From Eutreptiella sp. 'Long Island Sound 2002' (lineage: Eukaryota; Protista; Euglenida): a stretch of 64,000 nt of DNA. The notes beneath the pieces are model-generated. The model did no database searches. It saw only the letters and a program-made list of their open reading frames with translations, and was not told where the DNA came from. Shown here piece by piece: positions 1,849-24,375 of this stretch. Both the position numbers and the translations under genes were made by a program. The stretch covers positions 91,016,001 through 91,080,000 of the forward strand of contig OZ038378.1 in assembly GCA_964036045.1 (NCBI GenBank), given 5' to 3'. Position 1 is the stretch's first letter; each line of letters opens with the position of its first letter.

Positions 1849-2733
1849 AGTGCGAACAAACATTCGTATCTCCAGTCCAGTCTGGTTTGCTTCCAGTCGC
1901 CACCTGAATGAATGGGTTGACAGGGTGTTTGGTTGTCGTGGTTATTTGTGGTCTCTCGGTTGGCGATGATGCACCGCAGCTTTGGTTGCATTACGAGCTG
2001 GCCTTGCTACTACGTGTTCTATTCTTGCCTATCTGTCGTTGGTTTTACTCGTTTGTTCACGGAGACATCAGACCTCCGAGGTGAGAAACGGTCGTTCAGG
2101 GGGCCTCGATAGCCTTTGGAGGATCAGCCCACCATGTTTGCCTTGCTTTGGTTGGCAGCCCTTGTCGGTAGGTAGCCATCACACTAACCCGATATTCATT
2201 CTGGTCTTGAATATTCCGTGTTCTTCCGACGTAAAGGGTACATCCTGAGTTTTGCCTTACCCCACCCATGCTACTTTTCTTTCTGTCTTTTATTTCACGC
2301 ATTTTACGCACTTCTGTTATAAACATACTGCCCGAAGGACCTGGAGGCCTGAGCCCTCCTCTAGTATGCCTAATTACTCTGCTTTATTTACTCTTACTCT
2401 CTTGCCTTGCCACCTACTTTGATGGGTAGTGCTGCCTGCAATTTCCAGCTGTACGTATACAACGTACGATGCAGCTCGTTGCACTGCCAAAGCAGCAGCG
2501 CAGCTCGTTACACTGGCGAGGAAGCAGCACAGTATAGCTCTGTAGGTTACGCCACAGAATGGTTTGCCTGTACAAGTTTATGTGTAGTAATTTATGAAAG
2601 TTCACGTTTGCATAGATGTGTTGCTGGTACTAACTGCAGCTACACTGCAGCGCAATGCTTTTTCAAGCAGAACCTGGTAATGCTGTAAGGCTTTGAGAAA
2701 CTTGCCATCGTTGCAGTGAAGTAAGGTCTTCAG

Positions 2734-3005
2734 GGTTTTCTGTGCTTTAGCACAGTGTGTGCTGATGCTCCCGCATTCTGGTGTGCCTAGTGTTCCTGAG
2801 GGGTGACAGTGATGCCTGTGAGGCCAGCCAGGCTGACCCGGGTGAGACTTACGACCCGCTGGGTTTGACTGACGAACCTGACACCTTCGCCAAACTGAAG
2901 GATATTAAGAATAAGATCAGCCGTCTGGCAATGTTCTTCTCATTGTGCTATTACAAGCAGGCTATTGTGATCAGTGAGGGAGGAGTTGAGAATCCCCAGC
3001 ACCAG
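2734..3005 (+). pseudogene. Lhcb: Degenerate chlorophyll a/b-binding (LHCII) fragment, helix 2 end to helix 3
   Basis: PGETYDPLGLTDEPDTFAKLKDIKNKISRLAMFFSLCYYKQAIVISEGGVEN aligns by eye to LHCII [52 protein letters not shown]. Chl ligands E and N are altered, the upstream VLM motif is in another frame, and no N-terminus is seen. Confidence 0.85.
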
Positions 3006-5787
3006 TGGTCAGTGTCCTTCCCTGCTGGGTACCCCTGTGGCTCTGCTGACTGCCTGTGGTCGTGTGTCTCACAATTAGGCTTCATGGCACAGCGCCCCGA
3101 ACTCAACACGTGGTTGGGGAACATCACCTTGTGTTGCTGGTACCGCGTTAGTAAACCAGCCCTTCTGCGTTTCAGGTGGAGTCTACAGTATTTTGTGTTT
3201 AGCTGACTTGTTACGGCCTACACTTGTCTCGTTGTGGCTCTGCCTGAGCCTGCATGTATGTCAATCTATCCTGTGTATTATGTATGGACTGCTGTCCTGA
3301 TGCTTTTCTATTTTTTTATCCAACTTTGGCAAGTGGACCCTTCCTGTATCGAAGTGGGATTTCCGACTTGCCAGAATTTCCTGTTGTTTGTTGAAATAGA
3401 CTGAAGTGACCAACCTTTCTTCTTGCTCAGTTACCTCTTTGTTTCCTCTCACTGATTACTCTGTCTGAGCGAGAGCCTACTCTGGATACTGCTTACAGGG
3501 GCTGGAGGGTTGGTAAATGTATGACCGGCAAAGCAACAGAAGCGGTGCCCGGGGTGGTCAAAAGCTCTGGTTTCCGGACAGCCCCCTTATCTCTTTCAGA
3601 ATGCGGGGGGGAGAGTGCTGCTTTTTTGTCCAGATAGAGGATCGACTGTTCTTTGAACCTGATTTATGGTGACTGTGTCTAAGATTCCTTATTCTGAACC
3701 AATGTCCAGGCAGTACCTCCTGTTGGATGCCTGAAGAACCTTAGTACTAGGCATTGCCAGGTTGATATCGCCCAGGCCAGCATGTCTTTTGCTGTACTCT
3801 TGTTCGGTATTCAGTGTGAACCTTCTGTACAGCACCACTGTGAGTGCCCCGTCCCAAAAAACGGGAGTTTCGCGCGCCTGTGAGAAGTGGCAGTTGCTGC
3901 GCACTGGTACCCAGTTTGGATGTCCCAGGCCTGACGACCGGAAGCCCATGATTCGATCACAGGGCGTTCTGCTTAGTACGTTTGGGTTTTACAGGCTGTA
4001 TAGCCATAGTTTTCTCTCTTCGGAGCATGCGACAATTTCATACGCACTGTTTTCTCTTCGCCCACTGGGAGGGCGCCGACTTGTCCCTGTTAAGGACAGT
4101 GGGATGTGCAACTTTGTTTGTCTGCATGTTTTAATGACGGTTGAGGGTCCAGACCACATGTACAACTGGACCTCTGGTTCTGTTATGTGGATGTGGACCC
4201 TGTCTACTGTGCAGAGCAGTTTCCTTCCTCCTAGTTCATTTCCTAGTTATTACTCTCGCCACTGTCGGATTCTTTGCTGGTACTTTGTGACACCCTGAGC
4301 GTATATCTCTCCGTATTCGAGGTACCTGACGTGTACAGGACAGTCCTGAATTGTCTGCCACGGGTCCACTGAAGTGAATGTCGGTGGTACTTTGTTTTGC
4401 ACTTAGTGGTCAAGTCACAGTCTTGGGCAGGACACCAGCTTCTTCAGTCGGTAGCCGCAGACACGGCCTGATTTGTTGTTGAAGTCCTGCCTTGTTTGTT
4501 CAGGTTAACCAGACATTAATCTCCTTTCGGTACCGTGTACGCTGAGGTGCCCTGACGACCATCCATGTTAAGCTATGTGATTACTACGATGGGATACCGA
4601 TACCTGGGGGCTCGCCAAAGCCATGAGCATGACAACAATTTTTGAGTAACCCCGTCCGTACCCGGAAGTGCATAACTCAAGTCGAGGAGACCTCTGAGGA
4701 TGCAGGGAGTGGGTATTACGTCTGGACTTTGTCGAGATAGCCAGAAGCGTAAGTCTGGGGGGACTATTCTGCCGCTTGACAAATAATTACGTCTGGACAT
4801 GGTTGAGCTACCCAGGTTTGTAAGTCTGTTATGACCGTCCTGGCCACTCGGCGAACTAGGTAACCTTCTTAAGTTAAATCCATGAGAACCTCTGAGTTCC
4901 CAGTTAGCATAGGCGTAGGAGGTGTGAGTACAGGTCTGAAACCACTTTGCTTCTAACGACTCTGGAAATATCCTGTCATACCCAGAGCTAAGGGCTGGAT
5001 GTAATCAGTCTGTGTGACAATAACGGCCCATGGTGTTCCAGGAATTGGCCTTGAGGCATTTGCCTATGCCTGGTTTCGCTGACGACAATGATTCACTGTT
5101 CTATGGTGTCCCCTTGTGTCTTGCCTAAGGGAGGATCATTTTAGTGTGGGTTCACATCCTCGCACCTGCCGAGCTATGTCTGGCGAGTGGTAGTAATTCT
5201 CCTGTCTAGACTTTTCAGCTACAGTCTTCGCTCTGGCTGCACTTCAGTGCATGCACGATGCCTACGAGACCGGACGTTGTGCTGTCCTTTTGTGGCTCTC
5301 AGGGTGTATAGAATTTGCAAGGTGCATTTTAATGTGAACCTGCTCTGTCCTCTATGGTCTCTGAACGTAGGATACCGAACAACTCCTTAGAGTTTGTTGG
5401 TGAGACGATGCGGTATTATAGATGCATTACTGCCTCCGTCTGCCAAGGCCAAGTTTCTGACTTCTTTGAGCGTTGCTTTGTCCCCTATCTTTTGCAATGT
5501 AGCTTTTGAAGTGAAAGGCCCTGTTTGGTGTTTGCCAGGCCGTGCGGCAGGGTTGTGTTGTATGAGTCGAGCGTTTGTGTAATTTGTGTACAAATGTAAA
5601 CAGGGCTAATTTCTAATGGTGTATGGGTATACTGATGTCAGAATTGTGACTGTGGGTAGTGTATCAGGAGCGAACCCAGCCTCCTCAAGGTTAGTAGTCC
5701 TCCTCTGGTGTTTGACTAGCGTCTCAGAAAATCTATGAATTTGCTCATGAGAAGTAATTCATGTGCGTCACCTGGTGTGGAGTGTAT

Positions 5788-6949
5788 CACATATGATTTT
5801 ACGATGTCGCCAGATCCCAAAATTCAGTTGCCGGACTACCGCTGAACCCGCCGCGGTCGCGATTTTCCCGCCGCAGCAAGCATTTCCGGCTCATTTTGCG
5901 AGATTTGTGCCAATTCTGTGCGCAGTTAAGCAGATTTAAGAAGCGCAATCTGCCAATCGCAATCATATCCTGCTCTTGTGATCAAATGACGGTCATCCCA
6001 TCAACCTTTAGGGAGATATTTCCAAAATACCGCCTTTTCGGGCCTTTTTCGGCACTTTTTCACGAAGAAAGTGGCCTAAGTGGATCTCGGTGAGGTCTCA
6101 TGAGATTTCAAATGGGTCAAGGTTCTCCCTAACGTTAGTTTGGCCTTAGCAAACCACAATATTTGACCCTAAATGGTGGTGCATCAAGATAATTGAGTGG
6201 CGGGTGCCAAAATTGCCTCAAAACAGCCATATTTGCCCCTTTTAACTTGTAAAGGTTAGTTTGGCCTTGGATGGAGGCAGACACAGAGCAGGAAAACACA
6301 ATTTACAGCATCCGTATGTACACAAATTTGCCGTTTTTCATGAAAAATCGCAAGAAAAATGACCGTTTTCCGGTCAAACATTGAGTTCTTTTGGCCTGAG
6401 ACAAGCAGTTGAAGACCCCCCTCTCCATTTGGAGGGTGCTGGATACGAAGAAGCAGGTTGTAGAGGCAAATATATCACGAAAACACAATTTACAGCATGC
6501 GTATGCACCAAAATTTGCCATTTTTCGGGAAAAAAACGGCCAAACATGGTTGTTTTTTGGCCAAAAATTGAGTTTTTTTAGCTTCAGATAACCAGTTGAA
6601 GACCCCCTCTCCCTATTTTGAGGGTGCTGGATGCTAACAAGCAGGTTGCAGGGGCACACAGATCACAAAAACGCAATTTACAGCATGTGTATGCACCAAA
6701 ATTTGCCATTTTTCATGGAAAAAAACGGCAAAAAATGGCCGCTTTTTGGTGAAAAATTGTGTTTTTTGGCCTCAGCCAAGCAGTTGAAGACCTCCCCACC
6801 CCTATTTTGAGGGTGCTAGATGCAAAAAAGCATGTTGTATGGGGACACAGATCGCCCAAACACAATTTACAGCATGCTAACTACTTGAATGGGTGTTTTT
6901 TTTATTGTTGCAGGTTTTGGGATTTTTGGACGTCATAAAATCCTATGTG
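5788..6949. mobile_element. Non-autonomous TIR DNA transposon (CAC...GTG family, element E) with internal tandem array
   Basis: Left end CACATATGATTTTACGATG...ATCCCAAAA; right end reverse-complement CACATAGGATTTTATGACG...ATCCCAAAA. No clean TSD. Confidence 0.75.
6295..6880. repeat. ~187-bp tandem array, about 3.2 copies, inside element E
   Basis: CACAATTTACAGCATG-like motif recurs near 6296, 6482, 6669 and 6858; CCCTATTTTGAGGGTGCTGG is shared with the 37.7-39.1 kb array. Confidence 0.85.
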
Positions 6950-8867
6950 TGGTTGTATGTTCAATCGGTGCGCTTCCTCAAATTAACCGCTGTCCGAGTT
7001 GATAGTAGCATATCAGCTGCTTCATGCACTGTATGCACACTTCCGTCTGTATTTAATTTCTGTGCTATCTGGTCCCGACTGATGTCAGGTGTGTTGGCGG
7101 AGAGCCAGTCTCAGAGGATGCTTGCCCACAGGGTGCTGCATGTTCACCCTGAGGACGTAAAGGGTGACGTTTCATTCAGCTAGACTGATCACCTGAGTAC
7201 AGATTGCTGCATGTTCTCGGAAAGGGAAGCTCATTGGAGTACAACGACAGGGTTATTTTTCTGCTACTTCAAAGAATACCTGCATGGCTGTCTCCAGGTT
7301 GTGCCTCATTGGTCTGTGCCTCTGTGACTGGGACGCCTGTGTTCATTTCGCAGATTCCAGATATCCAAAGGCTTACTGGATTTTGTAACCCTTCTGATCG
7401 TCTCCAGAATGCAGAGCCCTTACATGATGATGTGATTTGCAAGGCAGATCTAAAAAGACAGTTCCTTTGCAGTGCTGGCAGCCCCGGGTACCCCTATGCC
7501 TGAGAGTTTCACCAGAGCTTCCTACTGGGGCATGACCCCTCTGGATTTTCTGTTTCCAGTTATTCCCTCTGCAGATGTACTGGTAGCTGCTGCCGTTGGT
7601 TGTCGGCTTGCCTAAGACTTTTAGGTGCCGGGCCGACAAGGAAGAGGATTCCTGATATTTCAAGGAGGACCATGTGCCTGGAGGCTTGTGTTCTGAACCT
7701 CCTGGGGTGTGAGGTGGAATATTCTCAGAGTATGCAAGAAATGCAGAATTTTAGGTGAATTGCTTTGATTGCCATTGGCGTGGTGGGAGGCTCAGGAGCT
7801 TGTTTTGCGGGCGAATTTGTTCCAACTGTCATGTTGATTTCTAGTTTGCCGTGGTGTTTGCCTGGGCACAGTGCTTATGGCTTCTACACCCCTGTGCCCC
7901 TGACCAGAGCGCCCCCTAAGACTTCCTTACCTTTTGTGCGTCGTCTGGGGGGGAGCCACAAAAACTGCAGGTACAGTGTGCGGGGCACTCTGCTCACATC
8001 TGCGATTCGGCCTGCTAATTCTTGTCTGTAGATAGTGACGGTGGTATGCTATCGTTGAGATGGCTGGCCTGTCGCCGTCGCCATCGCCGACGTCTCAGTT
8101 CTTCAAGACACATTTAATGCTGATGAGAGTTTGTGGAATTATCGCCCTGATTTATCAATTTCTGAATGTCGTTTTATCAATAGAATTATCTCGTGCCCGA
8201 ATGTAGATTTTCATGGCGGTATTTCAGTGCTGTGCGCATCTCATTCATGTACATTCATTTTTAGCAATGTTCCGTGTCATGCGTGCTGAGTTTGGTGATT
8301 GTTTAAGCATACGAGTGGAATCGTTTGGTCGAAGCATGCATTCCTTCATTCATGCCAGTTCTCCTCACATGCATACAAATAGTATGTGCATAATATTGCC
8401 GTATGCTTCTCTTTGTTGCTTCCGTTATCTCTTTATAGGCATGTAGGCGGAGCCAAGCCTCGCCCATGCATGGGGCTACACAATAGATACGAGGCACGGG
8501 GGCTTCTTGGTGTGGATATAGATGACTCGAGGTTCAACCAGGTACGGCATAAAGAACAAAGATGCACTCATGCCGTACTGAGGAGTGCATTGCCTCCATG
8601 TGGGATTCTTGCTCTGGATTGTTGCTTCGCTTTGTTTGTTGTTTGCTCGATCGTTTGGTATCACATTTTCAAGAGAACCTTAGTTTGCTCCTGTGCTACC
8701 AAACCCACTCCCAATATATTGGAATACTTGTTTACATACACACACGATATACGTGCAAGGAACACACTCGTTTTGACACTCTTTTTCTGTTTTGCGGAAT
8801 ATGCCAATTTTGTTTAGGATGTTCGAAAGTTACAAAAGGAGTCGTCTAACTTTTTATCTTTGTACTC

Positions 8868-11800
8868 AGGGAGTGGCACGTCCGCCGGGCGAAGGAGCTG
8901 GCACAAGTACAGCAACGCTATTTTCAGAACCCCCAGCCCTACAAGTTCCTAAAGCACGTGGACAAAGTCCTGGGGGAAACCCGCCACCAAGGTATCCAGG
9001 CGGTGCGCCTGCGAAACAGCACAGTCACCAACAATCCCAAAGTGTTCCTCGAGGAAGTCCTGAAAAGCTTCCAACGCCAAAACAACACCGAGGAAGAGGA
9101 GTTATCCGCGTACACGGAGGAATTGACAACGCATTTGCCAAAACTCTACAACCGGACACAACGACGAGACATGCACGGCACCCCGTTCACCATTCGGGAA
9201 CCAGATGAAGTGCTGTACAAACTGCAACCGGGAAAATCCCCGGGGCTGGACGGCCTCCCGGCGGAGCTCTACCGCAGGCTGCCACTGAACCTGAAGAGAC
9301 ACTTGGCCGCGTGCCTGTGGGATATCGTCATCGGGAAAACAGACGTACCACCCTATTGGGCGAACCTGGTACACCCACTGTATAAGAAAAGCGACTGGGC
9401 CAACCCAGACAACTGGAGGCCCATAGTATGCGCTACAACGGGAGCCAAACTCTATGGATGCTCATCCACAAACGGGTGGCCCTGGCAGTTTACCGCGCTA
9501 TACCGCCCATGATATGGGGAGTCATACCTGGTAGGTCGCCGCTGGAGGCAATATTTATGCAAGAGGCCGCCGTAGACATGGACCAGATGAGCCTGATCAT
9601 CATGTCCCTGGATGTCGAGGGGGTTTTCCCCAACACCCCGCATCGCCTCCTACCGGCTGTCTGGAAACACATGGCACTCCCCTTCCAGGGTTTCCTACAA
9701 GCATATCTTGCCACCCGCATGTATGCAGTGAAAACGGATGTGGGCACCACCCCATGGGTCCGCCTCAGCAGTGCAGTCCCGCATGCAGGTGCGGAGGGCC
9801 CATTCCTCTTCCTGCTCGTCACCCTCCGTCTGGCCTTTTACATCTGGCGCACATACCCAGACGTGGCACCATACCCCCTACGGACCACGCTCCTAGCATT
9901 TGCGGACGACATAGCGGTGGTGACCGCCACCGCCCGTCAGCCCCTGCCAACCACCAGATGCCACCAGTGCCACAAACATACTCCATGCCGTCACCAACTA
10001 TCTGGAGGGCAACCAGCTACTGGCGCACAACGTCAAATCTGCCACGATGGTACACAACGCACCACCACCACCCCTCCGCCCAGGAGGCCCGCCCATGAAC
10101 CCAGTGAGCACGGCCACCTACCTGGGGGTCCAAGAAGCGGCCACAACCAACGAGGTCACCCTGCCACCAAAACCTGATACGGCAGCTGAATCGGACACTA
10201 GTCATAGCGCGCATCGTGGCACTCCCCACGCAGCTCCTGGCATACTTCCTACAAGCCGTGCTGAACGCAGCTATAGGGTTCCAGGCCCTGCACCTAACAC
10301 AACCCAAATAAATGCTGCAGGAGGCCATTGCCACGGTACGGCGAGCGTGGACCATCCACGGCCACCAGCCCACGTCACTACCCGCGGCGGTGCGCAGGGC
10401 GTCACTACCATACTACACGTACACAGCTCACACCGCGACCCACCTGTGTCGTCTCATGCACAATTATGAACCGGAGGTGAGGGAACTCTTCATGCACGTC
10501 GACAGTACGAGAGGCCCAGTACCATCGCAACACCTGCCCCGAATACATACTTCACCAGCGGGGCCTCCTCACCAAGGTAGGGACCCGCATATGGAATCAC
10601 CTACAAGTCCTGCTACCCCGGCACAAAAATGTCATCCAAACGGGCCATCTGTGCAGGGAGACCGGCCCTGTGGCGGTCCTACACACCGATGTGAGTGAAG
10701 GGCCAACAGGAAGCACCACCACTCTGGACATGGTGGGCACCCCGCTACACCTCGTACGACTCACTTTGAACCAGATGCGGGCCCTCCAGCGAGTGGGCAC
10801 ACACCACGTCCCCTTCCTACAGCACCCAGAGTGGCCCAGCAAGTCGGTGTTGGAAAGTCACATGCGAAACGCGGCCACACGAACCGGACACACAGAGCGG
10901 ACCGATGGGGAGGTATGTGGGGCATACGGTCTGTTTTGGAGCACGCACAAACGGCCGCTACCACGGGCCCCAGCAGGTGGAAACGCGGCCCACCACCGGC
11001 TGCCGGAACAAGTCGAGTATGTACCAGGCGCCACGGTGTTAGCGCTACTCCTCCTGGCGCCCAACGGACTCAAAACCACGTTGCGACCTGGCAGAGCGCG
11101 CGGCAACTTGTGGATGCTACTGCCGCCCACAGCACGCAACTTCTGCCCGCTGCTGCTACCGGAGGACACGCTGACGGGCACCTCCACCACTTGTTCGAGA
11201 TGTGGGCCCCAAGCGCCAGCCACCCCGTGGCCCCTCCTCCAACTACTGGGGTGCTACCACCACATACCAACGGCCCACGCTACCCCCGAACAACACCGGT
11301 GCCTGCACACACACTTCGAGCGGGCTTCAGCGGAGGACACGGCCACAGTAGCGTGGGGACCCAGCGCCGCGGCAGAACAGATATTCCATCGGGAAACGTG
11401 GGACACGAAGCACCCAGCCATTACCTTTCTGCCGCTGGCCAAACACCGCAGCAGCACACCGGAGGCCCCCGCCTACCCGGTTAAACACCGCTGCTCCATA
11501 GTCCAGGACTGGCAGACAATTGGAGGGACCACATTCCACCCACAGAAGGCGTACCTGCTATGTATACGGCTACCTCACAAAAGGCCGCGAAGGGAACAAC
11601 GACTATGCACGCATGAACTTAGCGGCAACCGGGATCATCCGCCAGAAAATAGTCGTCTACGCTACCTGCAGGCTCCAACCAGCCACCACCACACTGTGGG
11701 CCACGACAGAACAGGGTGCACGTGTCCGCGCCTACCAGCCAGCGACGCCATGCCGCCTGCCATGCCCGGACAACCACAACACCGTCAGTTTTGCGGATGC

Positions 11801-13538
11801 CACGAGCCTCACCCCGGCATCCAGGGGGGCAGCTTTGGAGTTGCGGATGGACGCCGCAGGCCGACTGCACCAACACCACCCCACAGGGGCCACCATCCTG
11901 GGGACCCCCTCCACGGGGAACCAAAGACACTGGCGATCATCGTGGACGTCGTCAATGACGCCCACCAACAACCGCGAGACGACGCGCACCATGTCTGGGC
12001 CATAGTACACGCAGCGGCGGACTTCAAGATCGTCCGCAAACAGGCCTGGCAGCCCCTGCACAGGACACCCGACTTCAGCCTGGGCACCCAGGCCAAACAC
12101 CTCTCGGCGGCTTGAAGACGCCTCCCCAAACACGTCGTCTTACACCTCGTCGAACAACAGTCCCATTGGTACAGCCTGGCCAACGGACACATAGACTTAC
12201 ACGCCCACAACCAGCTTGTAGAGCATATGCCGGACGGCGAGGACCCGCCGCTACAGGACCACATGCACAGACACCTCCAACACATACCGCCGATCCCGCA
12301 CCCCGTGGAACCACCAACCTGGGTACCAGACGACCAGATCAACAACTACACGGGACAGGCGTACCAATACCCGCCACCCATCCGCACCATGGCGCACATC
12401 CGAGGCAGCCATGCCGACAACACCCTCATGAACCACCTCCAACATAAACTGCAAACCGCGTTGTACTTCTCAGCTCTTGACCTGTCCCTGCTGCCGGTAC
12501 ACCTACAAGCACAATGTGCCCAACTCTTGCTCTAACAACTGCCCCTCCCAGACAGGGTGGCACGCTGGTAAGGCTGACGAGGTATAGACATACCCCCAGA
12601 ATACACCAGATGCCCCTGCCACCTCCAACAGCCGGAGACGTCACTCACAGATCCAAGACCGGGCAAAGAAGGCACAACACAAGCAAGTGCACAGCACGTC
12701 AACTGTCAACTGTTCCGGAACCTTTACCAGCAACACAAATCAAGTCCCAGGGACCTCAGTTCTCAACAGTTCTCACCAGTTCAACGTTGTGTTTGCAAGC
12801 AAGGCAAAAACAAGGCAATTGCAAAGCATTAGTCAGAAATGTTGTGTCAAAATTTAGCAGCCAATAGCCGGAAATGTCCAGAGCGATCTGCACTACAGCT
12901 GAGCAGCACAACAACAGCAGAACAACAATATTCAAACGACTTTTGGCAGGCATCTTTAGATTCAACCACAGCATTGTAATGTTCTGACATATCCACACTT
13001 TTGTGCCAAGGGATCAAATGTATTCAAGCAATGGATTTTGCAAAAATTCATGTTTGAACGACAAATTTTTGGCACCGCGGCCGTTTCAGATCCAGTGCGG
13101 TAGCGTAAATGCGGTTTGGCCGCAGAATGCCCCACAAAATCATAGGTGACATGGGAACACTTCGAACAATGTCCGTTGGCTCAAGGACGCAACCACCTGG
13201 CCACGTGGATACCGGAGGACACCATAGCACAACACGCCAGATGCAGCCCGACCGCCCCACCGAGAGATGAGGTCCGGCGCCTGATGCGGCAACCGGAGAC
13301 CAAGGAAGGGGTGCTCAGGGGAGCGGTACCGCTCCAGCTCTGCAGGATCATCGCCGACCACGCTCCGGAACCCGAAGCCACAGTACGTCACATGCAACTC
13401 ACCGCCGTCAAGAGGGCGGACGCACAGCTGCAGCACCGCGTCCAGCTGTACGCGCAGGAAGCACAACAGACCTCCCACGACCGCCGTATTTATTACAACC
13501 TCCTCATCCATTACCAACCCGCACAGCCCGGCGACTAG
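8868..13538 (+). mobile_element. Non-LTR retrotransposon family 1 ORF2, 5'-truncated and frameshifted: RT - RNase H - C-terminal CCHC knuckle
   Basis: KSPGLDGLPAELY, NWRPIVC, SLDVEGVFPN, PHAGAEGPFLF and FADD (8958-9920). RNase H remnants FADA...HGEPK...VLHLVEQQSH...NGHID (~11790-12215). CPCHLQQPET/WEHFEQC is split by the 12642-13148 insert. Stop at 13536-13538. Confidence 0.92.
12642..13148. mobile_element. 507-bp CAC...GTG insertion (element A) with 4-bp TSD ACGT/ACAT
   Basis: Flanks are ACGT (12638-41) and ACAT (13149-52). Removing the insert and one TSD restores GAG ACG TGG GAA CAC (ETWEH). It is an inverted homolog of 14050-14575. Confidence 0.85.
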
Positions 13539-13667
13539 CAACACACACTGGCACACGGCAACCGCCAGGAAACTGCCATCGCACCACCCGCCACACCGCA
13601 CTGCACACAAGCGCGCGCACTCCCGTACAGTAACCTGATTGTGCCACGAACTGTACCTCTTCTCAGG

Positions 13668-14049
13668 ATGCCTGCCGGTGAAGCCCCCCATCCGCGGCCT
13701 GGGATCCGATGTGGCGTCTGCTGGGAAATACTCGAAGAGAACGACGCCCCACTCCTTGGGCATGACCTCGGCTGCGGCAGCGCCGAGCAGCTGCACTGGT
13801 TCTGCAGCCCGTGCATCGCGCACCTGCATGCCTGCCTACTTAGCCGGCGGCGGCACCCCCTCTGCACTGCTCCGCTGCCACGCGAAACCCAATCCGACGA
13901 CCTCACGCTCCACACACTGCGCAACCTGATTGCCCAGAATGTCTCGGCGCGTGACGCAGAAAACAGCCCCGACGTTGAATGGATGGACGTCCTCAGCAAC
14001 CAGGACCCAGCAGCACCGCCACCTCGCCCCCCCTCGGCGTGCACCAACG
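13668..14049 (+). CDS. RING-finger (C3HC4-type) ORF downstream of LINE ORF2, cut by element B
   Basis: CGVC-x17-C-x6-H-x2-C-x2-C-x13-[H]PLC: ...RCGVCWEILEE...LGCGSAEQLHWFCSPCIAH...RHPLCTAPL. The seventh ligand is H instead of C. ATG at 13668. Confidence 0.75.
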
Positions 14050-15790
14050 CACCTATGATTTTGTGGGGCATTCTGCGGCCAAAACCGCATTTACGCTACC
14101 GCACTGGATCTGAAACAGCCCACTGGATCTGAACCGGCCGTGGTGCCAAAAATGTGTCGTTCAAACATGAATTTTTGCAAAATCCATTGCTGGAATACAT
14201 TTGATTCCTTGGCACAAAATTGTGGATGTGTCAGAACATTACAATGCTGTGGTTGAATCTAAAGATGCCTGCCAAAAGTCGTTTTAATATTGTTGTTCTG
14301 CTGTTTTTGTGCAGCTCAGCTGTAGTGCAGATCGATCCGGACATTTCCGGCTATTGACTGCTAAATTTTGACACAACATTTCTGACTAATGCTTTGCAAT
14401 TGCCTTGTTTTTGCCTTGCTTGCAAACACAACGTTGAACTGGTGAGAACTGTTGAGAACTGAGGTCCCTGGGACTTGATTTGTGTTGCTGGTAAAGGTTT
14501 CGGAACAGTTGACAGTTGACGTGCTGTGCACTTGCTTGTGTTGTGCCTTCTTTGCCCGGTCTTGGCTCTGTGAGTTTACTATTTGCCTGATTTGTTGCAA
14601 AGCCTGTTCTGCAACCCTTGACTCTCCCTGAAAAGCGATCCCCTGTGGTGCAGAAGTACCCATTCCAACGGTCAGGCTTTGTAGCTCATCTTTGGCAAAT
14701 AGTCTCAAACTTGCAGGCACGGGCCCTTTGCACCGCACAATGCTCAAAAGAACTAGGCTTCACAAAGGTTGGCAGGTGTTTGAAATGACAATGAGAACTG
14801 AGGTTTGTGGTTAACTGAGAAGTCAGTTTGAACTGGTCCCACCCTACGATGCTCAAAAGAACTTTGCTTCACAAAGGTTGGCACAGGTTTTTGAACTGAC
14901 TTTGAGAACTGAGCTGTGCAGGTAACTCAGAACTCGGCTTGAACTGGTTGCAGCGTACGAGGCTCCAAAGAACTTCGCTTCACAAAGGTTGCCACAGGCT
15001 TTTGAAATGACGATGAGAACTGAGGTGTGTGGTTAACTGAGAACTCGTTTTGAACTGGTCGCACCGTACGAGGCACTGAGGAACTTCGCGTCACAAAGGT
15101 TGGCCCAGGTTTTCGAAATGACGATGAGAACTAAGTTGTGTGGTTAACTCAGAACTCGGTTTGAACTGGTGGCAGCGTACAAGGCGCTGAAGAACTTCGT
15201 GTCACAAAGGTTGGCCCAGGTTTTTGAAATAAAGTTGAGAATCGAGGTGAGTGGGTAACTGAGAACTCGGTTTGTGGTGCAGTCTTGGTTCCAGCTGTCT
15301 TGAATGGTTGAGAACTGCTGTAAGGAACTGGATGTGTACTGCCGGTGAACGGCATGCTGCTGCTGCTGCTGCTTGCTGCTGCCTGTTTTGTATCACTCCT
15401 GGTTTTCCACTTCCGTGCACAGTATACTTCGAGTTGACTTTGGGCATGGGCCTGATTTCGAGGACCTTCCACCTACGGGCATTCTTCACCCGCTTCGCGT
15501 TGCCCTCCACTTCTGCACCGTGGTGCTCTGCAATGGGCTGCTGCACTCTGGCGCTGGGCAACAGGCTTCACTGAAGGTCCTTTTGGGCCTGCTCTTTGGA
15601 TTTCACTCTGGGTTTCCTGACCTCCGAGGTCGTTCTGGGCATCCTGGTTGGGCTTCACTCTGATTTCCGTGACCTGGGGCTGCTGATTTTGGTGGATTTC
15701 AGTTGACTTCGTCATTCTTGAACTGCAAGTGGAGATCTGTGCTGCTGGTGGTGGATATGCAGCAAGTGTGTTTTGTGTTGCCACACTCCA
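14050..15790. mobile_element. CAC-terminal element B, longer relative of element A; right end unresolved
   Basis: Starts CACCTATGATTTTGTGGGG; about 520 bp are the reverse complement of 12642-13148. Confidence 0.7.
14735..15290. repeat. ~111-bp tandem array, 5 copies, inside element B
   Basis: TCACAAAGGTTG recurs at about 14760, 14870, 14980, 15090 and 15200. Confidence 0.85.
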
Positions 15791-15942
15791 GTATGTAGCA
15801 GTTTATTCATTGTGCACACACCCAAAAATCTGCCCCCCCCCCCCGCTCACTTGAGGTGTTGTGTACAACCCCAAGGATCCCCCCCCCCCGGGGGCTCTGC
15901 ACACTTTTGCCTCTTACCTATCATCAATTTCCTCCCTAGACT

Positions 15943-16450
15943 GACACATGGGCGCTGCTAGACGAGGGGGCAGACCCCACGATCTGGGTCCCAGACTACG
16001 AACATTATGACGACGCTCCACGGGGCAGCCTACCCCCCGTTGGCAATCTGCCAGACAGTTGGGGCCCCATCGGCCCCATGAACCGCGACAACTGGCGCAC
16101 CACCGTCATCACCCTCACCACCCGCCTCCCGTTCACCTTCGGCTGGCTGGTGGGGGACGCAGAGTGGGCCATGGGGGTCGTCCGCAGCGCCCATGGCAAT
16201 GAATGGGGGGATTTCTTCTACTGCAGCGGAAGCCTGGTCGAGGGGTCGCCCGAGAGGCTAATGGCGGTCTATCTAAAGCGAAGGGAGATACCCCTCCCCC
16301 GCGGCCTTGTGTCAGTGGCGCGGGGCGCCCAACAACCGCTCGTCCGCCTGCCACGGCCGGTCATGTACGGCAATGCGGCGGTGGCCAGGATGATTGCCGG
16401 AGGTGCCCGGCACCACAGCTCCTCCACCTCCACCTGGAGAACCGCGACCA
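15943..16450 (+). CDS. Unknown Trp/aromatic-rich ORF segment, possibly the continuation of the RING ORF
   Basis: Open frame DTWALLDEGADPTIWVPDYEHY...NWRTTVITLTTRLPFTFGWLVGDAEWAMGVVRS...; same strand and C/A-rich composition as the LINE. Confidence 0.45.
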
Positions 16451-19000
16451 TGACCACCCTGCCTCGTGCGCCACAGCAGCAATCAGGGCGACAAATGTTC
16501 GCGCTCTGGCACCATCGGGGGCCGGCACACCACAAAACCCAACGGCCTCCGCGTCCTCCAGCCCGTCCACCTCCGCCCCCCACGCAACCGTCGACTCACC
16601 ACACCGACCGCAGGCCACCGACGCCACACCGGCTAGGGGCGCTCTGGCACCATCGGGGGCCGGCACGCCACAAAACCCAACGGCCTCCGCGTCCTCCAGC
16701 CCGTCCACCTCCGCCCCCCACGCAACCGTCCACTCACCACACCGACCGCAGGCCACCGACGCCACACCAGCTAGGGGCGTTCTGGCACCATTGGGGGCCG
16801 GCACGCCACAGAGCCCCCGACAAGAACGTGCATCCAAATGGGCGGCGCAACAACACCAACCGCAGCACCATGCAGCCACAGCGATCCGGGAGCACCGGGC
16901 ATCACCTGCAGGGAGGGGAACCAGCCCCACAAATACTGCGACAGCAGGCACCCGACCCGAGCAACCCCTCAGCACCGTACACCCGCAAACGGGCCCAGGC
17001 CCAGGCTCCACAGTCGACCCAGCTCCACAACCCCAGAGACCACCCAAAGCGTCCACACGCGGCCGCCAGCCAGCAGCCTGCCAACCAGCTGCAACACAGG
17101 CCAACCCGGAGCCCCACCCGCACCACAGCCCACCAGTATGGCCGACAGAGGGCCCCACACACGCGCCGTCCGAAGGCCCTCCCACACAGACATGTACCAC
17201 TACCCCGACCAACGCCGCCAACGCCGGGCCCGAGCGACCCCTCGGCACCATGCGCGCCCACACCCACAAACCCACGGGGAGCCCCAGTCCCCAAGCTCCA
17301 CGGACACCCAGCACGTCGGCCCCGGGGTAGCATCCGCCGGCCCCGGCACAGGCCGAGCCGGCGTCCCAGCAGCTCCACGACCCACCAGCCGGACCGGCAG
17401 TACGGCCAACAAAAACGCCATCTCGCAATAGCCCGGCCCCCAACCCGGACCCGGATCCGGACCCGACGCACGCCACCGTCACGGCTGACGCCCCGCGGGC
17501 AAACGCACCAGGCCGCGAGCTACCGACAGGGGTGCCGCGTCCGGAGGGCGGGACACCGGAAGCCAGGCCTGCCGCGGCGGAGGCAACTGGCGGCACGCGG
17601 GCACTGGCAGGCCACGTGGGAGGCCAGCCCAGGCCAGCACCCGTGCCGGATGGCCAGACCCGAGAGGTGGCACAACTGGCAGACAGCGCAGCCACGCCGC
17701 CCGCACCGCCCGCCCAGCCACAACGGGAGGAGCCCAAGATGAACGCCACGGAGGAAACGGGGGGACCCACCCAGCGGACAGAAGTGCCACTGCCAGCGGC
17801 GGACCTACCCGCCCGGGGACCACCCCGAGCGGAGTTACCTAGCGGGGGCGCGGGCCAGACAGGAACCCAGCGCGCCAGCGCGCCGGCCAATCACCCGCCA
17901 GACATGGCAGCTTGCGGAAGCGACGAGGGACCAGACGCTGGCCAACCTGGTACGGAGCCTCGGGGACCAATGCCGGACGCCGGGCATGCCGCCGGCCTCC
18001 CCCCACCAACCGCCCACGGGGCGCGACCCGCTGGTCACGCGGGCGCCATCCCCTCCACAGCCCCAGCATATTTCGGAGACGCAGGCGCGCTGGGGAACGC
18101 CGCATCCGGGGAGCCACCACGGGGCCCGCCTGGAACCCACGCAAAGTCTGAAGCCCCGGCAACCACACCCGACATGCCAAAGCGCGCAGCCGACAAGGGA
18201 ACCTCGCCCGGCGGGCAGAACCGCGATGAAGACCCCATCGATGCCTTCATGGAGTCCCGCAAGAGTACCCTCGACACGGACCCAACACGGGCTGCCCAGC
18301 GCGGCCATCCTGAGCCAGGAGACAACCATACAGGGGGCAAACCCCTGACGGTGTCCCGCCAGGCACACGTCCAGTGCAATTACGCGGCCCCGGGGACGAA
18401 AACTGAACAGGCCGCCGCCACGGAGAACGGGCCCGAGACCGCAACCGGGGCAGCGGACCAGACCCCGGACGAGCACAGCGCCCCAGGGAGCGGAACGCGT
18501 GTCGCGACGGGCAGCATTACCGCTTCCGAACCTGCCGACCAGCCACCGAGGACAACCCCATCCTGGGGGCGGGGGCATCTGGACTACGCGCGCTCGGAAG
18601 GCGACGCCCGCCACCCCAGCGCCCACGCAGGACAGGCGGCGGCCCAAGACCTGGACCTATGGATCGACAGGATCACCACAGGGGAGGGGCTCGCCCTGGC
18701 GGTCAGCATCTGATGGCTGCTTACTTCACCATCCCGCCACCTCAAGGAGGGAACACGCACGATGGAGGACGTCACATTGGGCCATCGGGCAGAACTGCAC
18801 GCAACCCCGACCACAATGGACCAATCCCGGCCACTGGCACTACGTGGCCACCCGGCTCATGGCGCATATGGGAATCTACAGCGCGGACAAAATGAAAGGG
18901 CTACGCTGGCTCTGGCCCCATCGCGCGGCCCTGCACATCCATACAGCCATGCAAAGGCACACTATCTGGGCCATCCCTGGGTCCCCGGGCTACCAGGGAC
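16450..19000 (+). pseudogene. Long Pro/Ala/Thr-rich disordered ORF with a globular C-terminal remnant
   Basis: ORFs 16203-17330 and 17532-18713 share one frame, separated by a single TAG. They are followed by DLDLWIDRITTGEGLALAV... and, after a frameshift, WHYVATRLMAHMGIYSADKMKGLRWLWP. Confidence 0.55.
16501..16810 (+). repeat. 138-bp (46-codon) tandem repeat x2.3
   Basis: GCG(C/T)TCTGGCACCA starts at 16501, 16639 and 16777. Confidence 0.9.
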
Positions 19001-20024
19001 ACACCTCGGGCCACCGGCGACCACGGTCCCAAGAGGTTCTGCAACCCCCCAGGCAGGCGACACGCCATACCTCCCCAGGACGCCACCAGGGGCCATCACC
19101 CGCGTTGGGTTCCTCCCAAGGCATGTACAGAAGCCCCCTCCGACCATTCGCCCCGCGAAGGGACCGAGGCAGCGCTCACACTCCAGGGGTGCAGGGCGGC
19201 ACACCAGAGCGGCACCAGGAGAAAAGGAACCCTGGCCGCTCCCGGCGCCGCAGCCGCACGCTGCCTCCCGCAGCACGGCGAGTCATCCTCCACGAGGGTA
19301 TGGACAGAAGCCGTGGAGGCCCGAACAAACCCGGTGCCCAACGGACATCATCTGCCACTGATCCCTGACCCCAGTCCAAGATGCCCCGCACCAAGCAGGC
19401 GAACATCTTCACTGTTCACACGCCGGCGGAGCGAGAGCAACAGGCAGCGCTCCACAGAGACCCCCACCAGCCAGCAGACGGTGCGTCCAGCTCATCCGCC
19501 GCCTCCCTCCCAGGGTCGGCGGCCGGCTCGCTGCCTGGGGGCCAACGCACCGTGGACACCCGGCTAAGGAGACGCGCGGCCGACCAACGGCCCGAACACG
19601 GGGTGGGGGGATGAACCCCTCAAGGCCCCCCCCCCGCAAGCAGGGCGCGACGACAGCGGCCCCTGACACGGGCAACGGCGACCCGACCTACTGGGCCCAT
19701 ACGCCACGGGGCTCCCCACTCGGGCTGCAACGCAGCCAAACCGCCGGGATGCGGAGGACACACCGCGACAACGGAAGCATGACGCGGCCGGCCCGGGAGC
19801 GGAAGAAGAAATGACGGAGACCTCCGGCCCTCAGAAATCCGGTGGCTCACCGCCCACCGCCTTGTCCTGTTCCATGCCCGAGCAACGGGAGCCCTCCACG
19901 GGGAATGTGCCTGAGGGACACCTTGGCACCACCCCAGGGCACCCCTTCCCGACTGCAACCACACCGGACCACGACCGGGAGACCATACCCCCTGCACCCC
20001 CCACACCACCGCAACGGACGAACA

Positions 20025-21120
20025 AGGTCCCCCCTGACGACGCGGAACTGAGGGTGCTCTACGAAATCCACGCCAACACACCCTCGAGTGGGCTTTTCGC
20101 AGCCCTTCGGGAACACTTCGGGGACGTCAGCCCAAACAGGCTCTTCGCAGTGGTCCCCCTGCTGCATGCCGCAACCACAGACATCTTTGTGCGGCAGGTC
20201 CAGGCGCTCGTCACCCCCGGGATGCAGATTGCGACCACCTTGCGTGGATCTGGTTGTTCAACGCAAACAACCCGGACCAGGGGGGCGTATGGGTCCCTCA
20301 CCTGGGCTGGGCACACACGCTCATAACACCATCGACGGACCCCAGACCCGCGCCCAGCACCGGGGGCGCCGCGAAAGGGGCCCCCTCACAACCAAGAGCC
20401 AACACCCTCAACATCCCACCGTACAAAGACCTGGTGGACTGGGAAAGCAGGACAGCCCATGATACGGGGCGCAATCTCAGGGACATGGTGGAGCAGTACC
20501 GGCCAGGAGCGGAGACGGCACGCGCAGGGCCCCCACGACAGGAAGATGACCCCAGCACCGTCGCCATGATCGTGTTGTAAAGTGGCCACTACTACCAAGT
20601 GCGGATCCCCCCGCACCCGCAGGAGTGCCACTGGAGACTGGAAGCTGTCGACTCCATGCTCCCGGCGAGCGCAGCCCTGCCAGACGGCCCCACCCCCCTG
20701 CCCCAAAAACCAGCCCCCAGACCCCCTGACGGCCATCGTGTCGAGCGAAGCTGGCACCTGGCACGCAGGCCATGCCCTCTACTGCCTCTGGTGGTGGGCT
20801 CAGCGCCGCTGGTTGCACACCAGGGACCGGACGGCGACGTGGAGGTTCCACCTGGACCGCCGGCAGCAGGTGAAGGCCATCCCCCAACGGGAGCGGACGG
20901 CGGAGACCGCCGCGGCGACCTTTTGCGATCCACCAGATCAGGGCGCTGGCGATGGGCGGGCAACTGCAGCCCAGCATCCGCACTGAGACGGAAGCCCAAG
21001 CAGCACACGCAGCCCTTGTGCACGAGATCATCAGTGCCCTCCGCAGCGCCCTCATGCGGCGTGTGGGAAACTCCCAGTGCCCTGAACCACCGGGAGCCGG
21101 AACCAGGAACACACTGCCAT
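20025..21120 (+). pseudogene. Ulp1/C48-like cysteine protease domain, frameshifted
   Basis: Ordered motifs: LVTPGMQI...VWVPHLGWAHTLI; AMIVL*SGHYYQVRI (His codon 20587); LEAVDSM (Asp 20650); RQQV (20864); then, after a frameshift over the expected Cys, PFAIHQIRALA. This matches the C48 order H-D-Q-CG.F. Confidence 0.55.
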
Positions 21121-23586
21121 GAACACGCGAGGCGGCAACGTTAGTACTACCACGCCCCGCCATACACGGCACACGCGTGCCCTGCCCACCGCGGCCGGTC
21201 GCCAGCAGTGGAAGGGCACCATGCCGACCCAAGGACCCTCCAAGAACAGAAGCGGCGCTGAGGCCGATGGGGGAAGACACACCGCCACGCACACGCGGCG
21301 CGAGCCCCACGCCAGCGGCCCGCTGATGGGCAGACGACACGGCACCCCTGGGACTGCCTCGTCCCACCAGCGGCTAAGGGAGCGGCCATAAACCGCGATG
21401 GCCCCTGGTAAGCCAACTCCACCCGGGGGAGCCCCCTCGCACAACTCAAAGACGCACAACCACGCAACACACCCCGCCGATGCCTGTCAATCGGACGCGC
21501 CGGCGAGAGTGGCATCGGGCCGCCAGACTTATGCAGCGGGCACCCAACAAATGCGGGCCAGCCTTGGTAGCCCTACACCCCGTGCTGTCAAGCAGGAACA
21601 CTAACCCGACCACCCCGCCGAACCCCAACGAATTCCTCACACGTGTCCCGGGCGAGGGCCACGCTCCCCGAGCCACCGCAATCCATCAGCGTCAAGGAAA
21701 GCGACGGGGTCCCCGACACTGACCTGTCCTTCCGCCTGAGCTTCCTCTCCCTCAAGCCGGGCACGAGGTGTACCGGACCAAGGGGGCAGCCGGACACGCA
21801 GGACCCATGGGCCCGCCAATGACCACGGGAATGTTACATCGAGCCCAGCCCGCCGTGTCATGCGGGATCCCCCGGCGTTGGAACACTGAATTGAGAATGT
21901 TACTTCCAAGGGCAGGGGATCAAGGGATGAATATGCCACCAGAGCCGACACCCATACCGTCCGAGAAAAGTGGACTCCAAGGCACCAGGTCAGAGGGCAC
22001 CCACAACGGCACCACTGGGACGGCTCCAGCACATGTAACCTGCGAGAATGTTGTGAGGGACACGCTCCCCGCAGCCCCGAAAGCTATCAGCGTCAAGGAG
22101 CGAGAGAGCGGCCTCAACACTGACCCATATTCCTTCATTTCATCCTGACCCCCTTCCCAGGACCCGGGAATGTGACGCCGAGCACGGCCCTCCGCGCCGT
22201 ACCGGACGCCCCGACACCAGGGCACAAGCCAGGCCACCCTAACCTCCGGCAACCACACGGAAGCACCGACGCACACACCACCGGAGCCGCAAAGCACGGC
22301 ACAACACGGCACATGACGGACATGGCCTGAGCCAAGGCAACTGGCCGGCGGAAACAAGCACTAGCACCGCACCACCGAGCAGAACAGTACCCCGGGGCTC
22401 CCAGGGGGAAAATGGGGGTGCACCGAGGAGGACGAAAGGGGCCTTGCCGGCGACGGGGGTGTACATATGATCGGCACAAGCGAAGGTGAAGGGACAGCCG
22501 AAGGGCACTGCGATGTACTAGATCATGAGTTGTGTGTGTAAGGCTGCCTCCAGGGCGGGACAGGGCGTGTCGTACCGAATTTCAAAACTCTTCTCAGCAG
22601 TCGTACCAATTCTCAATACTTTTCTCCCCCCGAGGACACGCCCTACCATGAGGGGGCGACGCACCGCCAACACGTGCCATGCCCGCCCAACGCAACTAGA
22701 ACAACTGAAACGGACCCTACACGGACACCCCGGCCCAACGCATCCGACACAAGGACGGGCCGGCCATTAGGCGGCGAAGACGACGGCCAACCCAACAAAA
22801 TGCTGGTAACAACACAACAATCTCTCACGCAGACGCGCCGCAACCTGGCGAACCACGACAAAACACGCCAGACAGGAAACAAATAACGTAGGAAACAGCC
22901 TGTAGCAACCAAACGCGGCCGGCCAGGTTCATACGGGCCACCGCATAACCTCGAACGAGCCGACCACCTGCGGCCACGACGACGACGAATCAACACAACG
23001 CGTCAGGCACGCCCTGGTCGCAACACGACCGCCACATCGGTGGGCTGGACAAAACGAACCTCCGAACTAACCGGGAAGACAACCAAGGCAACACCCGGCT
23101 ACACCGGCGGGGGCTGCATGGCAGTCGACCCCGGGACGCACCAGCCGACCATAAGGCGGCTGACACGGCCGGATACCAACCCAACTGCTGCAGAAAAAAC
23201 CACCCGACAGTGAACAGACCGCACGCTAGCCGGCCGACTCCAAACCCGCCAGGAATGTAGGGGTCGGAACAGGAACGGGGTCCGATGGGTCGCGACACCA
23301 TGATGCGCCACGGCCACCTGCGACCATACCCACGAACGCACCACAACGCCGAGATTCTACCATTAAACGACCGACCAACCAACCACAACGACGTACTTCG
23401 AACCCCCGGCCCCCCGGGAGAGCGCAAGCTCGACCGAGTCAGGAGGCGTGAGTGTGCGCCACAGCATGCGAGTCCCGTAGCAAGTGCTTCTTCAGGTGGC
23501 CTCACTCCTACTGAAAACCTACCCAGGTGGGGGTGCCTGCAGCACAGGGCATTTGGCCTCGCTCCGGGCCCCTGGGCCCCAGAATC

Positions 23587-23859
23587 CGCAGGCTGATGAA
23601 GATCTGCGATGGGACCCTCCCCCACGTATTGTCGACCCGAAGGAGAGGAATGTGAGACTTCGGTCGAATATGGGTTACCTCTCTGGACAGAACCCGCAGT
23701 AGGGTGATGCTCGCGGCGACTGCGCCCTTCTTCTATGTGGGGGAGCCGCTTTGTGGGGGCACGTGCAGTAGGGCCGTTCGTGGGTGAGCAAAAGCCCCTT
23801 GGTAAGACTCCCCTGCGGGGCGACTGCAGTCCGGAAATGACCTACCTACCTACCTACCT
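23587..23859 (+). other. Structured putative LINE 3' end followed by (CCTA)n tail
   Basis: Hairpin 23621-23674; two GCAGT-AGGG...GGCG-ACTGC stems (23695-23724 and 23764-23828); CCTACCTACCTACCTACCT at 23841-23859. Confidence 0.6.
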
Positions 23860-23864
23860 CTCTG

Positions 23865-24375
23865 TTCTTTCCCCATCCTCGGCGGTATGCGCATCAAGTG
23901 AAGGTGTTTCTTTTCTATCCGGTACCGTACACTATGGTTCCTGTTCCTTGTAAACCAGTTGTGCCGCTCCATCCGCCTCATGATTCCCTACGCCCGCTCG
24001 ATGGGACTCCTGCTTCACCAGATGTAAGACCAGCGGCACACTCCTCATCCCCATATTGTGTACACCTGCGACGCCAGCCCCGTGTCCAGGGCTTCATGCA
24101 GCGGCTTGATGGCGAGTCTCCTGAGGGATGCCATGTGGACCTCTGCGTCCAGCACCATCCACACTTCTGTCACATCCTCCCCCAGCCTCGCAACCACGTC
24201 CGCCATCGTTTGTACCTCTCCATGGGACGGGACCCGTATACGACCTTGTCAACAATGACTACCATCTCCTGTCCTACTCCCTTGACCCGTACTGCTGCCG
24301 CCCCCGCCTTCGGCGGCTGCCCCTCCAATCCTGGCCCATCCAGAAACACCACCACTCTACCCTTCTTCGGCTCCG
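23865..24375 (-). pseudogene. RNase H domain of LINE family 2
   Basis: VVVFLDG...(HGE)...WMVLDAEV...LHLVKQESHRAGVGNHEADGAA, with one frameshift. Confidence 0.85.

Follow-up and report, generated by a model that had tools for sequence, protein, structure and literature searches.

Evidence for an ~18.2-kb LINE family in Eutreptiella whose conserved third open reading frame carries a RING-type finger and a protease-like domain

Long interspersed nuclear elements (LINEs) are usually 4-8 kb long with 1-2 open reading frames (ORFs), and the accessory proteases reported for them so far lie inside the pol ORF, upstream of the reverse transcriptase (RT) (PMC4640811, PMC9977147). NeSL and Utopia are non-LTR (long terminal repeat) retrotransposons of ordinary length, with a restriction-like endonuclease (RLE) and site-specific insertion, in which a Ulp1-like cysteine protease occupies the N-terminal part of a single pol ORF, upstream of the RT (PMC4640811). 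The Dualen LINEs of Chlamydomonas possess a Josephin-related cysteine protease together with both an apurinic/apyrimidinic endonuclease (APE) and an RLE (PMC9977147). The locus described here lies in a 64,000-nucleotide stretch of the genome of Eutreptiella sp. 'Long Island Sound 2002' (assembly GCA_964036045.1, contig OZ038378.1, positions 91,016,001 to 91,080,000), which is referred to throughout as the window. Window positions 8864-23859 very probably make up most of a single full-length but decayed copy of an ~18.2-kb APE-type LINE family, in which a third ORF (ORF3) with RING and protease-like parts follows ORF2 and has been kept by selection.

The window copy aligns collinearly with 13 fetched copies of the family over window 8864-23855. 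In family coordinates (hereafter ref, in which window 8864 is ref 2744 and the ORF2 stop at window 13536-13538 is ref 6922-6924), the collinearity with other copies spans ref 1-15297 and is unbroken across the ORF2 stop. The order within the family is a ~3-kb 5' region, ORF1, ORF2, ORF3, a 2.8-kb 3' untranslated region (UTR) and a terminal (ACCT)n. Base composition over ~9000-23500 is G+C 0.56-0.73 with a C/A skew on the + strand, and dips at 12500-13000 and 14000-16000. The features recognized in the window are the following.

8864-12639, + strand: middle part of LINE ORF2, comprising the RT and the region after it (ref 2744-6536; 85-88% identity to copies C7, C4a and C5)
12640-13144, no strand: 505-bp nested insertion, outside the LINE (missing from all other copies, alignments resuming exactly at 13145; G+C 0.48)
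13145-13538, + strand: C-terminal end of ORF2 with stop TAG at 13536-13538 (stop common to aligned copies)
13668-14048, + strand: start of ORF3, with ATG at 13668 and RING-like finger at 13710-13844 (ATG conservation, ligand pattern)
14049-15945, no strand: 1.9-kb nested insertion interrupting ORF3, outside the LINE (missing from other LINE copies)
15946-20035, + strand: middle part of ORF3 (collinear with other copies; majority frame open throughout)
20036-21085, + strand: C-terminal domain of ORF3, Ulp1-like by motif, with stop TGA at 21083-21085 (alignments, ESM Atlas, dN/dS)
21086-23839, + strand: 3' UTR, ~2.75 kb (no long open frame)
23840-23859, + strand: (ACCT)5 tail, the 3' end of the element (common 3' end of copies)
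23858-23869, + strand: target-site duplication CTCTCTGTTCTT (partner at L032:1630-1641)

The 2.28-Gb genome was searched with four query segments, taken from the RT, the sequence after ORF2, the 'Ulp1' part and the tail. Each returned hundreds to thousands of candidate matches at 82-92% identity, and the spacing counts are drawn from the best 40 matches per segment. The RT and post-ORF2 segments are 3.72-3.77 kb apart in at least 10 other copies, the post-ORF2 and 'Ulp1' segments 4.43-4.46 kb apart in at least six, and the 'Ulp1' and tail segments 3.39 kb apart in at least three, with equal-spacing copies on many chromosomes. The matching distances in the window exceed these values by 0.5 kb and 2 kb, owing to the nested insertions at 12640-13144 and 14049-15945. 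Twelve of the fetched copies extend as far as the ORF2 stop, and every one of them continues directly into the RING region. The family as a whole comprises more than a thousand candidate copies.

The 3' border is common to these copies. (ACCT)n terminates each of the seven fetched copies that include a 3' end, the flanks differing from there on; genome matches to the tail segment all stop at the same position, and differently 5'-truncated copies all keep the same 3' end. The 5' ends vary (ref 1, 129, 413, 2486 and further upstream), the pattern that 5' truncation would produce. Comparison with the sequence 5' of the window extends the family homology 2.9 kb upstream of ref 1, which was accordingly rejected as the 5' end of the family, and the same full-length 5' start is found in most of the best 40 genome matches. 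The first 5.7 kb of the window copy are located upstream of the window (C1:91007642-91013326), and the part at C1:91010591-91013326 joins window 8864 exactly (ref 2747/2744). This exact join indicates that the LINE copy was split by an insertion of 11.5 kb of foreign DNA, to which window 1-8863 belongs; window 8864 was thus rejected as a 5' truncation point, being the position at which the copy resumes after the nested insertion. With three later insertions included, the current span of the window copy is 32.2 kb (C1:91007642-91039859).

An exact 12-nt target-site duplication, CTCTCTGTTCTT, is present at window 23858-23869 and at L032:1630-1641 (C1:91007630-91007641). Both copies occupy the expected junctions, one directly before the 5' end and the other directly after the (ACCT)5 tail, 32 kb apart, and a match of this length has a chance of ~1e-4 for the 46 x 48 positions compared. 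Since CTCTCTGTTCTT brackets the entire unit, the window copy corresponds to one insertion event of an ~18.2-kb element. No LTR-like self match was seen when copies were compared against one another by BLAST. Read from these borders, the whole ~18.2-kb unit was demonstrably mobilized as one RNA through target-primed reverse transcription. The point that tells against this extent is that the full-length 5' end is based on two sequenced copies and the coordinates of other matches.

A sequence-only reading of the window had proposed one element of over 15 kb that starts at 8868, carries ~10 kb of 3' cargo and ends in a (CCTA)4 tail. A single element is borne out by the target-site duplication and the collinear copies, and its length had been understated. 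Its start was misplaced, as the copy resumes at 8864 with its 5' 5.7 kb upstream of the window. The region downstream of ORF2 is indeed extensive at ~8.4 kb, of which the insertion at 14049-15945 forms no part, and the sharp 3' end with a short tandem repeat was correctly recognized, with the tail to be read as (ACCT)5. Its expectation of fixed spacing downstream of the RT agrees with the distances observed for the post-ORF2, 'Ulp1' and tail segments, and a check of ORFs and Pfam matches likewise found no second APE or RT downstream. Neither a predominance of RING/Ulp1 segments unlinked to this RT, nor another APE-RT downstream of them, nor copies ending just after ORF2 were seen.

ORF1 comprises ~430 codons and ends with a TGA at ref 1609-1611, within AATGA. 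It is followed by ORF2, a single frame of ~1,770 codons (ref 1612-6921) established through a chain of overlapping protein alignments between copies. The ORF2 stop is TAG in nine of the 12 aligned copies and TAA in two, both of a diverged subfamily, and this exchange of TAG for TAA indicates that the stop itself has been kept. Within a 939-codon piece of ORF2 (L018:2824-5640), Pfam identifies Exo_endo_phos at residues 52-241 (29.7 bits, cut-off 24.5), which a second copy matches too, and RVT_1 at residues 553-775 (46.9 bits, cut-off 29.6); the RVT_1 match in the window copy is weak (25.7 bits, ORF 9428-10174). The presence of both APE and RT domains in ORF2 makes the element a true APE-type LINE, and an APE upstream of the RT, a simple-repeat 3' tail and a target-site duplication are all found. 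The nearest solved relatives are human LINE-1 ORF2 proteins, weak matches with E ~1e-5, and a word-based protein search with the APE-RT piece returned same-family matches only. A Cys/His motif is situated at the end of ORF2. ORF1, the 5' region and the C-terminal part of ORF2 gave no match in Pfam.

Two further observations concern the coding content upstream of ORF3. An RNase H-like motif series (FADASG, GEL, VDA, H-x-x-x-x-N-x-x-x-D) can be made out by eye after the RT, in L014:1735-3336:- (ref ~5600-6050, window ~11700-12150), a piece for which Pfam lists no RNase H domain. A further conserved reading frame occupies the initial 2.9 kb of the full-length element (L013:1501-3915, L032:1642-4590), represented in the 5' region of one copy by pieces of 290 and 475 codons in a shared frame with no match in Pfam, so that the 5' region may hold an extra ORF ahead of ORF1.

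Frames downstream of ORF2 were mapped on the majority reading of 13 copies aligned over ref 6400-15297. What the sequence-only reading described as a RING ORF, a long disordered ORF and a Ulp1/C48-like domain is resolved in this way into one reading frame, ORF3. It is open for 1,840 codons (ref 6925-12422) and in frame with ORF2, whereas the other two frames remain open for at most 786 codons. The first ATG, at window 13668, lies 43 codons past the TAG, ~130 nt after the ORF2 stop and on the same strand, as the sequence-only reading had noted. Eleven of 12 copies retain this ATG, and directly before it stands a pyrimidine tract with AG, CTCTCCTCAG, which resembles a splice acceptor. Counted from this ATG, the protein-coding length is ~1,800 codons. 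The ORF3 stop (TGA, TAA or TAG) is kept in seven of eight copies and is a TGA at window 21083-21085. The encoded protein would begin with the RING-type finger and a short conserved block (to ~16400), followed by a low-complexity linker of ~1,100 codons, rich in Pro, Ala, Gly and Thr and with internal repeats, and a C-terminal domain of ~350 residues. The long C/A-rich and G+C-rich open region that had been reported after the RING is thus present. In the window copy, frameshifts and stops are found in the middle part, and the C-terminal domain is frameshifted several times.

Two overlapping ORFs in place of a single ORF3 were considered and rejected: the frames tie at a 3-nt indel near ref 10117, which eight of nine copies read through. 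A stop-density map in ref coordinates is noisy, as the reference copy itself has indels. ORF1, ORF2 and ORF3 all occupy one frame, parted by single stops (TGA, then TAG). The chance of a shared frame is 1 in 9, and the arrangement hints at read-through or coupled translation.

The finger near the N-terminus of ORF3 has the pattern C-x2-C-x17-C-x6-H-x2-C-x2-C-x6-C-x2-C in copies C7, C2, C14 and C4b, with eight ligands in C3HC4 order and ligand columns that are invariant or nearly so across copies. In the window copy the eighth ligand is mutated (CLLS vs CPLC in other copies), and no Pfam RING match is obtained. The top Pfam matches of the finger cover the full model length (zf-RING_2 17.0 bits, zf-RING_5 16.2, zf-C3HC4 13.1), the best PDB match of the family profile is the RING of RNF4 (E 0.55), and those Atlas neighbours that have a Pfam family all belong to RING families (0.89). 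Speaking against the assignment are the gap between the third Cys and the His, six residues vs the usual 1-3, and the Pfam scores, which stay below the cut-offs (17.0 vs 27.3 bits for zf-RING_2; E 0.007 and 0.026). On its ligand pattern the finger at 13710-13844 is accepted as RING-type, with ligase activity putative.

The C-terminal domain is marked by conserved motif blocks in the order LQALxTPGxQIxDxLVDxW; VWVPHLGWAHTL; IAMIVLESGHYYQVRI...EAVDSM; and QRERTAE..TATNLCPVF. The succession of His, then Asp/His/Glu, then Gln, then Asn-x-Cys resembles that of the Ulp1/SENP-type cysteine proteases of clan CE, and the contexts of the blocks are likewise clan-CE-like (L-x-x-L-x-P-G-x-x-I-x-D, then G-H-Y, D-S, Q and N-L-C-x-V-F). 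The domain is shared with a sister family, found as a 5'-truncated copy on an ENA contig of the same organism, which has 69-75% nucleotide identity and in which the domain is likewise followed by the UTR and then the tail. Both the copies read and the sister family retain the His (GHYYQ) and the Cys (NLCxVF), and a Gln lies upstream of the Cys; in the window copy the motif around the Cys, which reads NLCPVF in other copies, is damaged. Neighbours of the domain in the ESM Atlas (score 0.95, 186 shared features) fall in 25 of 30 cases into clusters that carry Peptidase_C48. It is because of this motif order and these protein-language-model neighbours that Ulp1 is named, and a Ulp1/clan-CE protease appears to have a little better than an even chance of being the correct identification.

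The principal alternative, which carries substantial weight while falling short of an even chance, is that ORF3 is real and its C-terminal domain lies outside Ulp1/clan CE, with another or a new fold that could serve, for example, in RNA/ribonucleoprotein binding, and with a coincidental likeness of motifs. The formal tests, every one of them negative or uninformative, speak for this reading. No PF02902 match was obtained with Pfam in the window pieces, in 10 ORF pieces or in 37 family relatives drawn from an exhaustive profile search, the last yielding two chance matches only, and the single-copy ORFs of the 3' region contained neither C48 nor any other domain above threshold. A six-frame PF02902 scan of the genome detects other C48 loci, with 55 candidates listed and none at a listed copy of this LINE. 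A profile search of the PDB with the protease-like alignment, admitting E values as high as 10, gave no match. Two AlphaFold runs, supplied with 14 and 150 sequences, produced low-confidence models (predicted local distance difference test, pLDDT, 44.5 and 56.0), for which Foldseek against the PDB found no match at E <=0.001 and VIA-align a best Z of 4.1, limited to terminal helices. The acidic position is also variable: most copies have D, whereas H is found in the sister family and copy C2, and E in copy C3. The distance between the putative Asp and the Cys seems longer than in Ulp1. A fold outside clan CE would nevertheless leave unexplained the ESM-Atlas neighbours, almost all in Peptidase_C48 clusters, the agreement of the conserved blocks with clan CE in both order and local context, and the retention of His and Cys in the sister family.

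Of the ubiquitin/SUMO writer and eraser advanced in the sequence-only reading, the writer has a complete RING pattern with sub-threshold Pfam scores (13.1 bits for zf-C3HC4); the eraser has its motif block at ~20036-21082, and its C48 label was not confirmed by Pfam, PDB or fold tests. The two as a functional pair are to be taken as a hypothesis. An exhaustive profile search with the family returned 163 matches, and the eight of these that were looked up all turned out to be pieces of ENA assemblies from the same organism, so that none of them counts as an annotated relative of independent origin.

The C48 scan also brought up several near-identical matches that pass the cut-off and lie, at separate loci, within open frames of 1,182 codons; the loci include G000:C1:197535377, C1:84247907, C1:84303907 and C11:30342262. 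These may belong to another repeat family, one with a true C48 protease.

Constraint on ORF3 is apparent from substitutions. Relative to the sister family, at 69% nucleotide identity, the ratio of non-synonymous to synonymous rates (dN/dS) of the C-terminal domain comes to 0.44 when read in the ORF3 frame, compared with 1.63 and 0.91 when read in the other two, and since the low value is confined to the ORF3 frame, ORF3 was a coding gene under constraint. In a second comparison, differences fixed between two subfamilies were counted for each part of ORF3. They number 16 synonymous and 22 non-synonymous in the RING part, 15 and 13 in the part before the C-terminal domain, 10 and 17 in the C-terminal domain, and 30 and 61 in the low-complexity middle, with a synonymous excess in the RING and pre-protease-like parts. 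As judged from these patterns, the maintenance of ORF3 by selection is demonstrated.

Some observations run counter to this. The low-complexity portion, ~60% of ORF3, has neither a codon-position signal nor a frame preference; base composition leaves all three frames mostly open across ref 7900-10200; and no intact ORF3 was found among the copies examined, every one of which is decayed, with 74-90% mutual identity. The first two, together with the lack of a Pfam domain above threshold, would be compatible with a post-ORF2 region that is simply a long non-coding 3' UTR, its open frames a by-product of a C/A-rich, stop-poor composition. Such a region would hardly be expected to hold one frame open over 1,840 codons when neither of the others exceeds 786, to conserve the ATG and stop of that frame, to show a dN/dS of 0.44 in that frame only and a synonymous excess in the RING and pre-protease parts, or to keep an eight-ligand zinc-finger pattern across copies, and we regard it as very improbable. 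Least credible of all is a composite of a conventional ~10-kb LINE and an unrelated downstream repeat, joined by 3' transduction or repeated adjacent insertion and spread by segmental duplication, for which the extreme length, the composition shift after ORF2 and a few listed copy pairs resembling local duplicates (e.g. C4 at 93.05 and 101.52 Mb) might speak, but which is contradicted by the equal spacing on many chromosomes, the one 3' end shared by variously 5'-truncated copies, the target-site duplication around the whole unit, the same domain-UTR-tail order in the sister family, the frame that ORF3 shares with ORF2, from which it is separated by a stop and a start that are both conserved, and the lack, in the present data, of ref 6925-15297 copies with target-site duplications of their own and no upstream LINE.

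Downstream of the ORF3 stop, the majority reading contains no open frame of more than 200 codons, and the last 2.8 kb of the element are therefore 3' UTR. Its last ~200 nt are the best conserved part, and here even the sister family can be aligned well. Structure prediction yields a stable fold for these 3' terminal 200 nt, to which covariation lends no support, the sequences being too alike to tell. Several genome matches share only the last ~497 bp of the LINE (window 23363-23859), with an identical start and 91-92% identity, for example at G000:C15:46573788-46574284 and C6:79528659-79529157. Their identity exceeds that among the LINE copies, and they may represent a non-autonomous partner, resembling a short interspersed nuclear element, that uses the 3' end of the LINE.

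Of the DNA inserted into the window copy, the 11.5-kb block consists of L032:7327-10000 and window 1-8863, the window part being without an ORF of 180 codons or more. The insertion at 14049-15945 is a young non-autonomous repeat with at least four internal 111-bp tandem units. More than 500 candidate copies of it occur elsewhere in the genome at 96-98% identity, which indicates activity much more recent than that of the LINE it interrupts.

The position of ORF3 behind two stops raises the matter of its expression. Translation could conceivably proceed by read-through, by re-initiation, or from a sub-message generated by spliced-leader trans-splicing, and the last route would use the pyrimidine tract and AG directly before the ORF3 ATG. 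Genome-wide there are 5,458 occurrences of the 24-nt Euglena spliced-leader motif, compared with zero for a control pattern, and they are scattered along the chromosomes at irregular spacing, not only in tandem arrays.

From the likenesses of its two ends, it is reasonable to infer that ORF3 may function in ubiquitin/SUMO pathways. Its RING E3-like and de-conjugating protease-like parts would then act on the host ubiquitin/SUMO system in favour of the element, and relief of SUMO-dependent silencing would be one possible benefit; alternatively, the protease might process an ORF2-ORF3 read-through product. In its full form the proposal is tentative and, in our estimation, rather unlikely: the LINE would encode its own ubiquitin/SUMO effector, uniting a RING E3-like and a deSUMOylase/deubiquitinase-like part in one protein of 1,800 residues, which would disarm SUMO/ubiquitin-dependent repression by the host or process a read-through polyprotein, and which would be expressed from an 18-kb multi-ORF RNA by stop read-through or spliced-leader trans-splicing. 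Should ubiquitin/SUMO indeed be the target of the RING and protease-like parts, the element would provide a case of retrotransposon-encoded counter-defence, of a kind known mainly from viruses.

A large share of the repeats in the published E. gracilis assembly carries no classification (PMC11252322). With its more than 1,000 candidate copies, the family is relevant to the annotation of Euglena genomes, and also to the translation of multi-ORF RNAs in an organism with trans-splicing. In the literature searched we found no description of a LINE with a RING-plus-protease ORF downstream of ORF2, nor of such a LINE from Euglena.

The element described here resembles NeSL and Utopia in being a non-LTR element with a Ulp1-like accessory domain, the similarity in this case being too weak for Pfam. 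Unlike them, it has an APE-type endonuclease upstream of the RT in place of the RLE C-terminal to the RT that marks their clade, and its protease-like domain ends a separate ORF of ~1,800 codons downstream of ORF2, where it is paired with a RING finger. With Dualen it has in common that a protist or algal LINE combines APE, RT and RNase H (here a motif seen by eye) with a deubiquitinase-type cysteine protease (here protease-like); it differs from Dualen in that no RLE was seen, no Josephin match was obtained and the extra domains reside in a third ORF after ORF2. The ingi/L1Tc LINEs of trypanosomatids, which are ~5 kb long with one ORF and a poly(A) end, come from the same host phylum and share the order APE, RT, RNase H-like motif and C-terminal Cys/His motif, whereas the present LINE measures 18.2 kb, has three to four ORFs and ends in (ACCT)n. 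The terminons of bdelloid rotifers, telomeric elements of tens of kb with Penelope-like (Athena) RTs that lack an APE, are comparable as oversized RT-encoding elements with several extra co-oriented ORFs; the present LINE is, in contrast, dispersed and APE-type, with a target-site duplication. Among viruses, ICP0 of herpesviruses is a RING E3 and the adenovirus protease belongs to clan CE, both acting on host conjugation systems against repression. Here the parallel is one of functional analogy, with no relationship in sequence, and it sets viral proteins beside a LINE known from its sequence. What is new relative to known LINEs is the length of 18 kb, moved as one unit, and a selected third gene of ~1,800 codons, which together widen the view of what a non-LTR element can carry and still retrotranspose.

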